From: Zygophlyctis sp. KS116
Taxonomy: Eukaryota; Fungi; Chytridiomycota
Assembly: GCA_054661495.1 (NCBI GenBank)
Contig: BAAFSQ010000471.1
Coordinates: 1-5,713 of the forward strand
Direction: 5' to 3'
Length of the DNA: 5,713 nt
Shown here: one piece after another, positions 1-5,713 of the stretch
How the letters are laid out: every line of letters starts with the position of its first letter
How positions within the stretch are numbered: position 1 is the stretch's first letter
The notes under the pieces: generated by a model
The model's database searches: none
Seen by the model: the letters and a program-made list of their open reading frames with translations, nothing else
What the model was told of the DNA's origin: nothing
Position numbers and translations under genes: made by a program

Positions 1-135
1 CGGCGAATATAGAAGGTACCAACCTATAATTTGGTACTTAAACTTTTATGTATATATGCTCACTCTATACAAAATTTGGTATCTCTATCTAGTGTTTAAC
101 ATGTTGGTACCAGCTCGCCCAGGCCCAGAACCGCT

Positions 136-143
136 TATATAAA
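136..143 (+). promoter_or_regulatory. TATA-box-like TATATAAA upstream of ORF1
   Basis: Consensus match directly after a GC-rich patch (111-134); about 10 nt before ATG 153 and 40 nt before ATG 183. Confidence 0.3.
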
Positions 144-152
144 GATTTGACA

Positions 153-1421
153 ATGGACACCTCGTTTGGTTCTATCTACCCGATGAAAAGAGCCAGATCA
201 TATAGCTCCCCAGATCGATTTTCAAATCTGTGCAATCAGATTGCACCTTCTGAGGATTTTACTGAAATAGAATTTCTTACTCAATTTCAAAAAGATAATG
301 ATGAAGAATTAGAATTGGAAAAAAGTTCCCCTATTAAACTAGATGGAAAAGGAAATATTGAAGCAAAAATTATTCAATTAGAGCAAATGGTGCTTTCGTT
401 GAAAGAAACAGTGGATAGCTATGACAAAAAATTTGGAAAAATTGAGAAAGATGTGGATCGGAAACTTGAAGAAACTAATCAAAATTCTATCATGATTCTA
501 AATATATTAAAAGAGATGAAGATTAATTTTGAAAGAAAAGATACAATGATGGAAGAAAATATTGCGAAAGGGGGACTTAATAATCCCCTCAAAAAAGTAA
601 CATTTGCTAAGGTTGCCGCAGTTGATAAGAAAAAGTTAGAAATGGATGATGAATACGAAAAGAAATTAGTGGAATTTATGGGGATATCAAGAAAAACTGA
701 ACGGCGACAAATAGAAGCAGAAAAACCAGATGAATTGGAGGCAGTTTATATACAAGGATTTGGATCAACCATTTCCATAAGTAGAATTAAAAAGCATCTT
801 TTTGATCTACGTTTCTTATTATCAAAGATCAAAAATACTCGGAAAGTTGGACAGACGACAGTTGAATTTTTGGTTATGAAAAGCTACGCTAAAAGATTTA
901 GAGAAAGATTTGACGCCATGAGAGGACATTTTACGGTAATTACAGATTATGACCTTCTTAAAAATCCTTGGGAAATAGAACAATCAGAAACCGAATCTCA
1001 TAAAAAATTGAAAATTGTAACAGCCAAAATATTTAGAAGTGTGGACAATAGTCAGGACCAAACCGTCAAAGCATTCTTTAGAAATATTGTTAACAGTATG
1101 GGCCCAACTGCAAAGAATGAATTTAAAAAATTAGAAGAGCAAAAAACATCGTTCAATACTGAAAATGCCGGAATAGTAAATCCTGGAAAAAAAATTACAA
1201 AGGATGAAAATCCCAAAGAAAAAATAACTGGAAATAATAATGGTACGACAAATTCTGACCTTAATAACAAAAAAATTCATGACAACGTAGATAAAGTTGA
1301 AACTAAATCAAACGAGAACATGATGGGAGACCTGGAATATCTCAAGCTAAAAACTGTCAATCTAGATTCTGAATCTGAAATGGATTATAAAAATGACAAC
1401 GTAGATATTGATCAATTATGA
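153..1421 (+). CDS. LINE ORF1-like nucleic-acid-binding protein (coiled coil + putative RRM-like domain + low-complexity N/K/E/D tail)
   Basis: Long open frame (track opens at TTG 147; first ATG 153, second ATG 183). Heptad a/d pattern I71,I75,L78,V82,L85,V89,Y92,F96,I99,V103 (track numbering, nt ~357-470). TFAKVAA at 600-620. AVYIQGF...IKKHLFDL...VEFLV segment (nt ~735-956) has an RRM-like beta-alpha-beta-beta-alpha pattern. Lies upstream of pol. No CCHC knuckle. Confidence 0.8.
   Translation: MDTSFGSIYPMKRARSYSSPDRFSNLCNQIAPSEDFTEIEFLTQFQKDNDEELELEKSSPIKLDGKGNIEAKIIQLEQMVLSLKETVDSYDKKFGKIEKDVDRKLEETNQNSIMILNILKEMKINFERKDTMMEENIAKGGLNNPLKKVTFAKVAAVDKKKLEMDDEYEKKLVEFMGISRKTERRQIEAEKPDELEAVYIQGFGSTISISRIKKHLFDLRFLLSKIKNTRKVGQTTVEFLVMKSYAKRFRERFDAMRGHFTVITDYDLLKNPWEIEQSETESHKKLKIVTAKIFRSVDNSQDQTVKAFFRNIVNSMGPTAKNEFKKLEEQKTSFNTENAGIVNPGKKITKDENPKEKITGNNNGTTNSDLNNKKIHDNVDKVETKSNENMMGDLEYLKLKTVNLDSESEMDYKNDNVDIDQL
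1418..1421 (+). promoter_or_regulatory. ATGA start/stop overlap, ORF1 to middle ORF (putative termination-reinitiation site)
   Basis: TCAATTATGA: ATG 1418-1420, TGA 1419-1421. Confidence 0.7.
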
Positions 1422-2374
1422 TTAAAATCCTATACATAACATCGATCCCTAAGGATCATAATATAATATGGACCTTGAAGAATAAATCGGAAGCAAAAAT
1501 GATTCCAGATCAAACCCACCGTAAATCTAAAACTCTAAAGAAATATAATAAGTATTATTACCCGGAACACACAAATTCTATCTTCCTTTTGGAGCCGAAT
1601 TGGACCTTGAAATTTTACACAGTTCATAAACAACATAAAGTCTCTGACATACTTAAAAATCGCATCCCTAGCTTCAACCATCTTCAAACTGGTAATACAA
1701 CACGTAGTATTACAAAAATTGCAAATATTTTTCTTGATAATATAAGCTACAGAAGAGTTGGAAACTGGATTTTTAAGTATGATTTACAAGTATTGGTGAT
1801 TTATAAATGGAGAAAATTTCAAACAATTTGGAATAAGTATAAAGGTAACTATTCCATTGGGAACGAGACCAAGTCCCTCCAATTTTTATTGTTTCATACA
1901 CTTTTCATAGATAGATTGTTAATTGAAATATCATCTATTGGTGAAATATTAAAGTTGGATAATCAGAGAATATGGATTATGAATGGTCAAAATTACAAAA
2001 TTTTCATTGAATTGGCAAACGCTGATAACACTCCAAATTCTATCTTCCTTTTGGAGCCGAATTGGACCTTGAAATTTTACACAGTTCATAAACAACATAA
2101 AGTCTCTGACATACTTAAAAATCGCATCCCTAGCTTCAACCATCTTCAAACTGGTAATACAACACGTAGTATTACAAAAATTGCAAATATTTTTCTTGAT
2201 AATATAAGCTACAGAAGAGTTGGAAACTGGATTTTTAAGTATGATTTACAAGTATTGGTGATTTATAAATGGAGAAAATTTCAAACAATTTGGAATAAGT
2301 ATACAGATAGATTATTAATTCTCATATCTCTTATCGAAAAACCATCGGTTCATACAGATCTAAGTCAGTTATGA
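1418..2374 (+). CDS. Hypothetical 318-aa protein (extra middle ORF) with a duplicated ~89-aa module; function unknown
   Basis: 318 stop-free codons in AT-rich DNA. Its ATG overlaps the ORF1 stop and its TGA overlaps the pol ATG. The internal duplication (offset 462) and an apparent 66-nt indel both preserve frame. No family motif recognised. Confidence 0.7.
   Translation: MIKILYITSIPKDHNIIWTLKNKSEAKMIPDQTHRKSKTLKKYNKYYYPEHTNSIFLLEPNWTLKFYTVHKQHKVSDILKNRIPSFNHLQTGNTTRSITKIANIFLDNISYRRVGNWIFKYDLQVLVIYKWRKFQTIWNKYKGNYSIGNETKSLQFLLFHTLFIDRLLIEISSIGEILKLDNQRIWIMNGQNYKIFIELANADNTPNSIFLLEPNWTLKFYTVHKQHKVSDILKNRIPSFNHLQTGNTTRSITKIANIFLDNISYRRVGNWIFKYDLQVLVIYKWRKFQTIWNKYTDRLLILISLIEKPSVHTDLSQL
1572..1841 (+). 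repeat. 270-bp direct repeat, copy 1 (within middle ORF)
   Basis: CAAATTCTATCTTCC...GGAATAAGTATA; no mismatch to 2034-2303 found on manual comparison. Confidence 0.97.
2034..2303 (+). repeat. 270-bp direct repeat, copy 2 (within middle ORF)
   Basis: Matches 1572-1841 at offset 462 (154 codons); encodes the same NSIFLLEPNW...QTIWNKY peptide. Confidence 0.97.
2371..2374 (+). promoter_or_regulatory. ATGA start/stop overlap, middle ORF to pol (putative termination-reinitiation site)
   Basis: TCAGTTATGA: ATG 2371-2373, TGA 2372-2374. This Met sits where an APE domain should begin (MKLLYHNVNG). Confidence 0.75.
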
Positions 2375-5358
2375 AACTATTATACCACAACGTTAATGGA
2401 CTTGATCTTGCTAAGTTAAGATCTATAGAAACATTCCTCGCATCTTCAGATGAAGATATCTTATACGTTATCAGTGAACATTGGTTTAGCCAATTTCTTA
2501 GACTTCAAGAATCTCGATTCTTCATAGAATCATCAAAATGGCTAGAGAACCCACGTATCATTGGTCATCAAAATGGTGGTATGGCTGTTCTTGGCTCCAT
2601 ATCTCTTCTCAGTCAAGTACACGTTGAAATAACTTCTGACTACACAATAAGAATAAATGTTGTAGACAAACAGATTCTGGCTGTATATCTCCCCCCAAGC
2701 ATGAATGATTCTGAAGTGAAATACATCCTAACCGATAAGTCAAATACAAACATCGATACCTTGCTAGGAGATATAAATGTTCGTTTCGGCAAAATAATGA
2801 AAGACACTAGAACTTGGAATCTTAATAGAGGAGAGCTAATTTGTAAAACATTGAACTTCCATGGAATGGATATAATACCATGTCGAATTGGTACATCAGG
2901 AAATGATCATGTATTCTCTAAATCTCATGTAGAGTGGACATATACAACCAAAGAATTATTAGACTATAAATCTGATCATGGGCGAATGGAGCTAATACTA
3001 GAAGACAAATGTCAAAACAAGGATAAAAAAGCAAACCGTTCCTCTCCGGAAAAACGATTTGCCTTCAGTATCCTCAAGGATGACACTCTCCGAAAACTCA
3101 TTAAACACGACTGGATTTCCAGGCAATACATTTTGTTTGAAGTAACTGGAAAGACATACTATGAACTTAAAAAAGGAAACTTTCAGGATTTGCAAATTAG
3201 GAATATCGTAGATACTATCTATGATTTGTTCTCGCACCAAATCTATGATCTTTGTAAAACTCACTTTCCAGTCTACGACCCTGAAGATATAAAGACGAAA
3301 AGTTTTGACAATCATATAGATTCTCAATGTTCCACACTCAATGCAATAAGAATATTCAAAAGATCACAACGGGCAACAGCACAAAATTGTAAGTTCAAAG
3401 CTACAGGAACAGATGTGGTACAAGAAGCTACAGAATTTTATTCATCTCTTTATCATGAAGAATTTGATTCAGAAACTTTGACTAGTAACATTTTCAATGA
3501 CAGGTCTCTGAATACTTGGAAGACTTGTGGCGATGAAGTTCACGAAACTTTAGTCAAGTACAGCTCAGCTAAAGCCAGTGGTCCAGATGGAATATCTACA
3601 CGCCTCCTTAAAGTTCTTAATGAAGTAAAAGGCTTCTCTGATCTAATAGCAGAACTTTTTAATATATTCCTAGAATTCTCCAATACGCCTTCTATATGGA
3701 ATATATCTAGAATACACTTACTTATGAAAGACAAAGATGTGCCGTTTGTTTCTAACTCAAGGCCTATCTCCCTTACAATCATTTTGAGAAGAATATTTGA
3801 AAAGATTATTCTCAAAAAGGCTTTGAAAGAGCAGTGGAGCCAACTACATCCAAGTCAGGCTGGATTTAGACATGGTTGGAGTACATTATCACATATTCTA
3901 TTGAATGACGAATTGAGCAGAGGCAAAGGCATGATTTCAGCATACTTGGATCTAAAAAATGCATTTGATACTGTTAATCATGGTTATTTAGTAAAAATCC
4001 TTCATGATAGGAAAGTACAATCTCATGTTATTCAACTTATACAATCATTAATGCTTCGAAACTGTAAATCCAGTTTAGAGATCAACGGGTTGGTTGCTGC
4101 TTCACTCATTCAAAGAACTAGAGGGCTTTTTCAGGGCAGTATCCTCTCTCCATTTCTCTTTAATCTGGTAATTGATACGTTAGCTCAGGATGTGACTCGA
4201 ATCTTGCCGCAAACTACTATATTGTTATTTGCCGATGATATAGTTATAAAAACAGAAACTTGGTCGGAAATGCAAAAAGCAATTAACATATGTTATTCAT
4301 GGAGCATTAAGGCTAAATTGAAGTGGGGTATTAATAAATGTGGGATAGTAACAGGAAAAGATCCCTTCTCGATCATCCTTGGAGAGGAAGTTTTACCACA
4401 GGTCAACACTTATAAATACTTAGGGGTACCATTCACGTCCAAAGGAGTTGACTGGAGATCATACACCCAAAAAATTACTGAAAAAAGTGCAAGATTCCTT
4501 AAACACATACGAGCATACTCTATAAATTGGCCAATCAAACTTAAAATAGTCATATTTAAAACTTTTGTTAGACCAATCAGCGAGTATGCACTACCACTTC
4601 TAACCAGATGGATCACTAAGCAACCAGACTCAGACGTACTACTCAAAACATTGATAGAATCATATATTGATGGAATTCAATTTATATTTGGAAAAAGACA
4701 ACCTTTGACACTGTTGGAATCATTAGCTGGTCTCGGGACGTATAGATTTAGAATACTACAATTAGAAGCTTCTCTGGCGAGACATCTCCAAGAGATGCGC
4801 CCTCCCAATCCACTTTATACCTACATGAACCAAAACTTTATATCGGATAGTCGGAATTTTATAATCTCGAAATGTAAGTCAAGTGAATTATGGAAAAAAT
4901 GGACTCATTACAAGAAAATGGAGAAGTTCCCACTAAAATACAATACATGGCTAAAACACGAAAAATATGATGACCAAACTCAACAGATAGGCAAACTACA
5001 TAGATATATTTTCCATAGATGCAAAAATCGGGCTGGAATGGATAATATTCTTAACCAAACAGGAATAATCTTAAAAAAAGGAATATTATGGAGATCTAAC
5101 GTTGCATTTAGTAATACCACATGTCCTATTTGTACCAGAAAATTCAATCGAGCACATCTTCTTAGATGTGACCTCTACTCACTTTTAGGAATTGGATTTG
5201 AAGATATCTCTGTAACCAAAGCCTTCCAGGCAGACCTTAAGGAACTCAAAACCCAAAAGCTTGCTGAAAATTATACATTATTAGATTACTATCTCAATAA
5301 TGAAGACTACATACTATTCCAGACCATATATGATCAAGTTAAAGCTATTCTATGTTAA
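2371..5358 (+). CDS. Non-LTR retrotransposon pol/ORF2-type protein: APE (EEP) endonuclease + reverse transcriptase + C-terminal CCHC-type zinc motif
   Basis: APE motifs YHNVNGL, ISEHW, GGMAVL, AVYLPP, LGDINV, NDHVF, SDH (2971-2979). RT motifs ASGPDGI (GPDG at 3580), RPISL, QAGFR, YLDLKNAFDTV, GLFQGSILSPFLFN, FADD (4228-4239), INKC, YKYLG (4411-4425). CPICTRKFNRAHLLRC = CX2CX7HX3C (5122-5169). No RNase H recognised. Confidence 0.97.
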   Translation: MKLLYHNVNGLDLAKLRSIETFLASSDEDILYVISEHWFSQFLRLQESRFFIESSKWLENPRIIGHQNGGMAVLGSISLLSQVHVEITSDYTIRINVVDKQILAVYLPPSMNDSEVKYILTDKSNTNIDTLLGDINVRFGKIMKDTRTWNLNRGELICKTLNFHGMDIIPCRIGTSGNDHVFSKSHVEWTYTTKELLDYKSDHGRMELILEDKCQNKDKKANRSSPEKRFAFSILKDDTLRKLIKHDWISRQYILFEVTGKTYYELKKGNFQDLQIRNIVDTIYDLFSHQIYDLCKTHFPVYDPEDIKTKSFDNHIDSQCSTLNAIRIFKRSQRATAQNCKFKATGTDVVQEATEFYSSLYHEEFDSETLTSNIFNDRSLNTWKTCGDEVHETLVKYSSAKASGPDGISTRLLKVLNEVKGFSDLIAELFNIFLEFSNTPSIWNISRIHLLMKDKDVPFVSNSRPISLTIILRRIFEKIILKKALKEQWSQLHPSQAGFRHGWSTLSHILLNDELSRGKGMISAYLDLKNAFDTVNHGYLVKILHDRKVQSHVIQLIQSLMLRNCKSSLEINGLVAASLIQRTRGLFQGSILSPFLFNLVIDTLAQDVTRILPQTTILLFADDIVIKTETWSEMQKAINICYSWSIKAKLKWGINKCGIVTGKDPFSIILGEEVLPQVNTYKYLGVPFTSKGVDWRSYTQKITEKSARFLKHIRAYSINWPIKLKIVIFKTFVRPISEYALPLLTRWITKQPDSDVLLKTLIESYIDGIQFIFGKRQPLTLLESLAGLGTYRFRILQLEASLARHLQEMRPPNPLYTYMNQNFISDSRNFIISKCKSSELWKKWTHYKKMEKFPLKYNTWLKHEKYDDQTQQIGKLHRYIFHRCKNRAGMDNILNQTGIILKKGILWRSNVAFSNTTCPICTRKFNRAHLLRCDLYSLLGIGFEDISVTKAFQADLKELKTQKLAENYTLLDYYLNNEDYILFQTIYDQVKAILC

Positions 5359-5361
5359 AAT

Positions 5362-5424
5362 CCAGTTACCTTCCTCTCACTGAGAGGTTTAATGGAAACT
5401 GGTCTTAGGTTTTTACACCTAGGA
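5362..5424 (+). other. Two adjacent stem-loops in the 3' UTR
   Basis: CCAGTTACC (5362-5370) pairs with GGAAACTGG (5394-5402, 8/9), enclosing CCTCTC-ACT-GAGAGG (5373-5387). Then TCTTAGGT (5403-5410) pairs with ACCTAGGA (5417-5424, one G-U). Confidence 0.7.
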
Positions 5425-5442
5425 TATAAATTTAAAAGTTAA

Positions 5443-5448
5443 AATAAA
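5443..5448 (+). promoter_or_regulatory. AATAAA polyadenylation-like signal
   Basis: AATAAA 11 nt before the CCTAACCC tract; the AT-rich context lowers its significance. Confidence 0.45.
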
Positions 5449-5453
5449 GTATC

Positions 5454-5713
5454 TTACTTCCTAACCCTAACCCTAGGTCTTGCGTCCGGAAATGTAGGGT
5501 CTGCGTCCGGAAAACTAGGTCTTGCGTCCGGATTACTAGGTCTTGCGTCCGGAAATGTAGGGTCTGCGTCCGGAAAACTAGGTCTTGCGTCCGGAAATGT
5601 AGGGTCTGCGTCCGGAAAACTAGGTCTTGCGTCCGGATTGGCAGCTGGCTGATGAATTTTCTTATTGATACAAAAGTTACGTGTAATTGTCAATTTATCG
5701 AGGTTACTTTCTG
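5454..5713 (-). CDS. Possible 3' end of a minus-strand ORF encoding Pro/Asp heptapeptide repeats (may be only a by-product of the array)
   Basis: Frame stays open from the right window edge (ESNLDKLTITRNF...) through PDARPSF/PDADPTF repeats to RVRVRK-stop. No ATG inside the window. Confidence 0.25.
   Translation of the reverse strand, partial: ESNLDKLTITRNFCINKKIHQPAANPDARPSFPDADPTFPDARPSFPDADPTFPDARPSNPDARPSFPDADPTFPDARPRVRVRK
5460..5475. repeat. Short telomeric-type tract (CCCTAA/TTAGGG, ~2.7 units)
   Basis: CCTAACCCTAACCCTA, a perfect 16-nt match to (CCCTAA)n. Confidence 0.8.
5473..5640. repeat. Tandem array of 8 x 21 bp, order A-B-C-A-B-A-B-C'
   Basis: A=CTAGGTCTTGCGTCCGGAAAT, B=GTAGGGTCTGCGTCCGGAAAA, C=CTAGGTCTTGCGTCCGGATTA (C' ends ATTG). 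Invariant core TGCGTCCGGA; no spacers. Confidence 0.97.

Follow-up and report, generated by a model that had tools for sequence, protein, structure and literature searches.

An APE-type LINE in a chytrid genome whose 3' ends join directly to short telomere-like tracts

How does a non-LTR retrotransposon come to end, without a poly(A) tail, directly against a short run of telomere-type repeats? The question is raised by a contig of Zygophlyctis sp. KS116 (C471; 5,713 nt) that is, at its full length, the stretch of DNA analysed here (the window), in an assembly of 12.7 Mb and 1,175 contigs. All contigs come from short-read assembly, in which repeats may be misjoined; a run search found the C471 assembly sequence contained in freshwater runs. 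The window carries an APE-RT LINE composed of ORF1, a middle ORF and ORF2 on the plus strand, followed by a 101-nt 3' UTR (Table 1). At the end of this UTR, AATAAA (5443-5448) is followed by the 11 nt GTATCTTACTT (5449-5459) and then immediately by CCTAACCCTAACCCTA (5460-5475), the last 3 nt of which overlap the first unit of a 21-bp array (5473-5637). A sequence-only reading of this DNA had proposed that the element lacks poly(A) and joins a telomere-type tract directly, in the polarity of priming on the G-rich strand. Both proposals held: no poly(A) or A-run is present at the LINE 3' end in the window, the direct joining recurs in all ten family copies found by protein homology in this genome, and the G-rich run on the minus strand leads 5' to 3' into the antisense strand of the element. 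The chance expectation for the junction in the window is ~1e-6, and this value, together with a control search for tract-less ends, rules out a chance match as the explanation.

Table 1. Positions of the features identified in the window.
Feature	Position	Strand	Remark
Fixed end of separate non-coding repeat R, ending CTTATATAA	1-142	+	20 genome matches, unrelated sequence past the fixed end
ORF1, ~423 aa, coiled-coil region, without curated Pfam match	153-1421	+	Homologous fragments on C454 and C790
Middle ORF, 318 aa, from a 462-nt tandem duplication	1418-2374	+	
ORF2, 995 aa: APE ~aa 1-210, RT aa 456-687, C-terminal CCHC knuckle aa 918-933	2371-5358	+	
3' UTR with AATAAA (5443-5448) and clade-wide terminal motif ending CTTACTT	5359-5459	+	
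Predicted hairpins in the 3' UTR	5362-5402 and 5403-5424	+	z = -2.3, modest
Telomere-type tract CCTAACCCTAACCCTA, 2.7 units of CCTAAC; minus strand G-rich, its 3' end toward the element	5460-5475	+	
21-bp minisatellite, body of a truncated type-B R copy in LINE orientation; flank, not element	5473-5637	+	
Another sequence joined to the 21-bp array	5638-5713	.	Upstream neighbours differ in other runs; loose ends at 5637-5639

We next asked how general the junction is. An ORF2 homology search of the genome gave ten copies with a visible 3' end, from subfamilies 44-86% identical to the window, and in 10/10 the same terminal motif runs into CCTAA-N-CCTAA in one register. The fixed-register 3' flank that had been predicted across copies was thus recovered. 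All searches together yielded 14 ends with a tract in this genome, although three of the four additional ends were found with a pattern that included the tract and are not independent. When the genome was searched by pattern for terminal motifs not followed by C, there were 4 matches, versus 4 in the control, and 0 on element-bearing contigs, which puts tract-less ends at chance level. The family shows a non-LTR RT, an upstream ORF1, and 5'-truncated copies with intact 3' ends. The repeats of the middle ORF keep frame in 7/7 subfamilies checked, and other subfamilies have their own repeat-built ORF. This third ORF between ORF1 and ORF2 consists of tandem repeats of ~140-460 nt that differ between subfamilies. 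A separate long-branch family in this genome has an A-run at its 3' end.

The junction also extends to other samples, where it was present in 17/18 ends, down to 28% identity, and sits 8-14 nt past AATAAA or a near variant. The exceptions, L099 and L201, belong to one sister subgroup and are without the tract in the available sequence. In a FastTree tree of RT sequences the clade comprises 111 rows with 100% local support and stands apart from all named rows of this tree, which was built without an R1 reference. Protein searches found it only in environmental assemblies, with more than 100 members at <90% identity, and the clade is apparently large and undescribed. A metagenome scan returned mostly unrelated RTs and four useful loci; a pattern scan of a genome collection gave six prokaryotic matches, and the same kind of scan of a viral collection gave no matches. 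None of the RNA runs holds the element.

The tracts themselves vary in length and composition. Most are 11-16 nt, at times irregular, and 11 nt is the minimum in this genome. One family has three distinct tracts with three flanks, and another has tracts of 16, 16 and just 3-4 nt; because lengths differ to this extent within one family, the tract is not a fixed encoded block. The C count at the pentamer joint differs within two families, between two CCTAA pentamers the sixth position can be C, A or G or be absent, and a mixture of five-, six- and seven-base units makes up each of three tracts of 36-39 nt. The clustering of variation at the CCTAA joint and the long irregular tracts are the pattern that an enzyme, either telomerase or the element RT, would leave by re-aligning repeatedly on a short template, and the fixed start of the tract suggests that the element RNA supplies at least the first few bases. 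One alternative is that the LINE is an ordinary dispersed one whose RNA encodes a microsatellite tail, like those of the RTE, CR1 and L2 clades. This tail would anneal through 1-3 nt of microhomology and slip; the resemblance to telomeres would then be fortuitous, and chains of elements would reflect template jumps or the crowding of transposon-rich regions. Both microsatellite tails and 3' microhomology have ample precedent (PMC6007223), and the fixed start register, the 11-nt minimum in this genome and a junction microhomology of 0-3 nt fit such a tail. However, such tails vary between families, whereas here the tail keeps its telomere-like character across hosts and at protein identities from 100% down to 28%. 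The lack of target duplications, an almost tail-less copy (L184), and the same unit at non-LINE junctions in a host with TERT also count against an encoded tail, and we judge it unlikely. The CCCCTAA units upstream of the relative L100 hint, besides, at a tail unit that follows the telomere unit of the host.

The DNA past the tract is unrelated; it is usually a repeat or retroelement truncated at its 5' end, and its orientation matches that of the LINE in 18/19 cases. Nine copies have R next to the tract, truncated at varying points but always in the same direction (9:0, p = 0.004; a tenth copy is ambiguous), and ten other cases have a retroelement fragment there, predominantly in sense (9:1, p = 0.02); these neighbour-polarity counts are small and not fully independent. 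The fragments that follow tracts derive from other clade copies, a copia RT, a gypsy integrase and the C-terminus of a Penelope-like element. L178 consists of three elements chained through tracts, and further chains are found at L192, L101, C454 and C797. In four copies with both junctions we detected no target-site duplication, the longest stretch shared by the flanks being 3-6 nt of low-complexity sequence. C137 is an internal copy with unrelated transposon pieces on both sides, and several copies lie amid internal transposon debris. Rather than clean insertions at an intact site, the units are chains with a polarity or patches formed by end-joining. It had been conceivable that the 21-bp array was part of the element's own 3' UTR in all copies, a possibility we rejected since the flanks past the tract differ from copy to copy. 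The expectation of (CCCTAA)n upstream of the window was not borne out either: we saw nothing telomeric there, and the 5' neighbour of the element is another repeat.

These data are accommodated by a reading to which we give about an even chance, in which the window is a copy of an APE non-LTR retrotransposon from a deep clade whose reverse transcription is primed on short telomere-repeat G-strand 3' ends, those of healed breaks and probably also those of chromosome tips. The first event would be the appearance of a free G-strand 3' end, at an eroded tip, at a double-strand break, or where a truncated cDNA or repeat-R intermediate stops; telomerase would then add one to a few TTAGG(G) units. 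The element RNA, with a 3' end 8-14 nt past AAUAAA and carrying at least CC(UAA), would pair with the G-strand end and be copied by ORF2. The new, often 5'-truncated end might then be recapped, extended by another element, or end-joined, the last of which would internalise the copy. Speaking for priming at breaks and tips are the near-universal presence of the tract, the variability of tracts, the unrelated flanks, the one-way chains, the lack of duplication, the host TERT and LINE-free scars. On the other side, reiterative copying of an RNA-encoded tail by the element RT would give the same irregular tracts, and the endonuclease site is intact, which points to some part in nicking. Priming on telomere-repeat ends fits the data, and targeting of telomeres is one of two open readings.

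To place these tracts in the context of the host, we examined its telomere-related sequences. The RNA-binding domain of a host TERT is encoded on C66 (E = 3e-22). The whole assembly lacks (CCCTAA)3, and it holds no longer irregular array except the C590 tract; since (CCCTAA)3 is absent, the telomeres are either not assembled or different. Short tracts like those of the LINE are also seen, on either strand, where transposons meet with no LINE involved. Among 12 such free scars, 0/12 carry letters of the element 3' UTR and 1/12 has the T that precedes most element tracts, and this lack of element UTR bases favors telomerase as the scar maker. The scars bear on a further alternative, in which the element RT acts as a second telomerase and copies the RNA 3' end reiteratively onto broken ends of any kind; this would produce the tails and, through aborted insertions, the free scars. 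Scars and tails are alike in length range and irregularity, as this would require. Its difficulties are the same scar counts, the presence of TERT, and the precedent of telomerase-made interstitial repeats in mammals (PMC2246262); we regard it as highly improbable.

The sequence-only reading had described a telomere-targeting or end-capping APE LINE. The junction, its polarity, the APE domain, the head-to-tail chains and the host TERT agree with that description; a location at chromosome ends does not emerge from the data, with C137 internal, no (CCCTAA)3 assembled and the tracts short. No copy could be placed at a chromosome end, and none has a telomere array upstream. In its strict form, like that of TRAS or MoTeR, targeting would mean that the APE nicks the G-strand of a telomere array at a fixed phase, so that the tract is the proximal remnant of the array; the chains would be telomeric arrays, and copies found internally would be relics carried inward by breakage and end-joining. 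Internal copies such as C137 do not exclude this, because MoTeR leaves internal relics of the same shape, consisting of 3' ends with a short telomere stretch, and its stable arrays keep <=2 repeats (PMC7367193). Full-length elements directly after a tract (L178, L100) and the Penelope-like fragment after L189 are further points in its favor. So is L199, where a full-length element, headed by a 20-bp tandem repeat, lies at a contig end ahead of a 153-bp satellite and a RecQ-like helicase gene; this context is suggestive, yet the helicase is opposite in direction to the Magnaporthe TLH genes and known telomere-linked helicases. Likewise, 0 of ~95 clade proteins lie on contigs >24 kb, but repeats in metagenomes generally sit on short contigs. 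Moreover, tracts that are nearly always 11-16 nt are not array remnants of random length, the cuts in the flanks fall randomly within dispersed repeats and LTR elements, no copy follows an upstream array, and the specificity hairpin is missing. Taken with these points, strict targeting appears to us rather unlikely. The gene behind the L199 satellite (L199:7923-11950) is broken and resembles fungal telomere-linked RecQ helicases; it has no match in this genome.

We then considered the endonuclease, which had been read as an APE rather than a restriction-like enzyme. This assignment was correct: the catalytic residues N7, E36, Y106, D134, N136, D179, D202 and H203 are intact, conserved in 57 sequences and aligned with those of L1. 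The APE model (pLDDT 95) has L1 EN as its best structural match, and TRAS1 EN ranks 37th by fold. The bB6-bB5 specificity hairpin region (APE at window positions 2371-3000) is ~15 residues shorter than in L1, with no hairpin in the model. By a rough regular-expression measure, loop spacing is 43 residues here versus 36-80 (median 51) in other LINEs, and a short loop is not unique to this element. Deletion of the hairpin loop in L1 lowers activity and changes specificity (PMC1950540). Retention of the catalytic site together with the lack of the hairpin that reads duplex targets in L1 and TRAS1 suggests that the enzyme may trim or nick near ends and not select a duplex site; the short loop in the predicted structure is a hint toward end-processing, as a supporting detail. 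A bolder version of priming on telomere-repeat ends, which is possible though we are doubtful of it, is that the whole clade depends on host telomerase for its primer. No target nick would be made; the element would mend internal double-strand breaks to which telomerase had just added one to three repeats, telomerase and retrotransposition acting in succession at the same break, and the missing hairpin would be an adaptation to this.

The element works like TRAS, MoTeR and Athena, but departs from each on a defining point. Head-to-tail chains of 5'-truncated units in one polarity, like those described here, are built by HeT-A, TART and TAHRE in Drosophila; there telomerase has been replaced and the ends are oligo(A), whereas here TERT is present and the junction is telomeric. 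In endonuclease-independent L1, a LINE RT was reportedly primed on telomere-repeat ends, in work attributed to Morrish in 2007. Telomerase is known to act at breaks, leaving interstitial repeats (PMC2246262). Both are rare side reactions in those settings, whereas here an entire clade has the junction as a rule. TRAS of Bombyx mori (R1 clade) is likewise an APE-RT element next to telomere repeats with G-strand-primed polarity, and in its sister SART1 short telomere-like RNA stretches aid priming (PMC7265360). TRAS and SART carry poly(A), are inserted within long (TTAGG)n arrays and possess a specificity hairpin of 11 residues (PMC1950540); the present element, in contrast, lacks poly(A) and the hairpin, has short tracts, and falls in an RT clade of its own (in the tree without an R1 reference). 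No long telomere array lies on either side of its copies, in an assembly where none is assembled at all. The fungal CRE-like elements MoTeR, FoTeR and Cnl1 share the short TAACCC tract after the 3' end, head-to-tail arrays with short interstitial tracts, and internal relics (PMC7367193, PMC12857005), but they use a restriction-like endonuclease instead of an APE, and their telomeric location is proven whereas here it is unproven. Athena and Coprina attach to exposed G-rich overhangs via short reverse-complement telomeric stretches (PMC8557442), and have a Penelope-type RT, no endonuclease and hammerhead ribozymes, as opposed to the non-LTR RT and APE found here with no ribozyme match.

In the literature we searched, whose coverage was incomplete and did not extend to Repbase, no fungal APE LINE of this kind was described, and the target-specific APE elements named there belong to the Tx1 and R1 clades only (PMC4640811). 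The telomere-associated retrotransposons so far described from fungi either lack an endonuclease or have a restriction-like one; the present clade would add an independent lineage, with an APE, that is linked to telomere repeats. It would provide a natural system in which a LINE RT routinely starts on telomere-repeat ends while the host keeps telomerase, which bears on the sharing of DNA ends between telomerase and the enzymes of retrotransposons, and on the origin of interstitial telomere repeats.

Several observations concern the neighbours of the element. R is abundant and non-coding, with one fixed end (CTTATATAA), a variable other end, a minisatellite body, same-direction tandem chains and two types; it resembles a non-autonomous rolling-circle element. 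Its sites include both flanks of the LINE in the window (1-142 and 5473-5637) and, elsewhere in this genome, contigs C873, C745, C341, C790, C615, C582 and C137. R was rejected as the LINE 5' UTR, as its fixed end joins many unrelated sequences as well as LINE positions 142, 2343 and 4221, and a hammerhead ribozyme in R or the UTR was rejected for want of an Rfam match. At L050 (C811; 78-95) an irregular G-rich tract lies directly on the R fixed end at TTA, in a polarity opposite to that of the LINE tracts, and looks like a telomerase scar. At L053 (C826; 94-123) G-rich and C-rich tracts stand back to back, with a short palindrome at the junction. The C-terminal part of a Penelope-like RT follows directly after the tract at L189:4744-5196, with no GIY-YIG domain visible beyond it. 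Lastly, seven-base CCCCTAA units lie directly upstream of a relative of the element (L100:53-73), which perhaps comes from a host with TTAGGGG telomeres.
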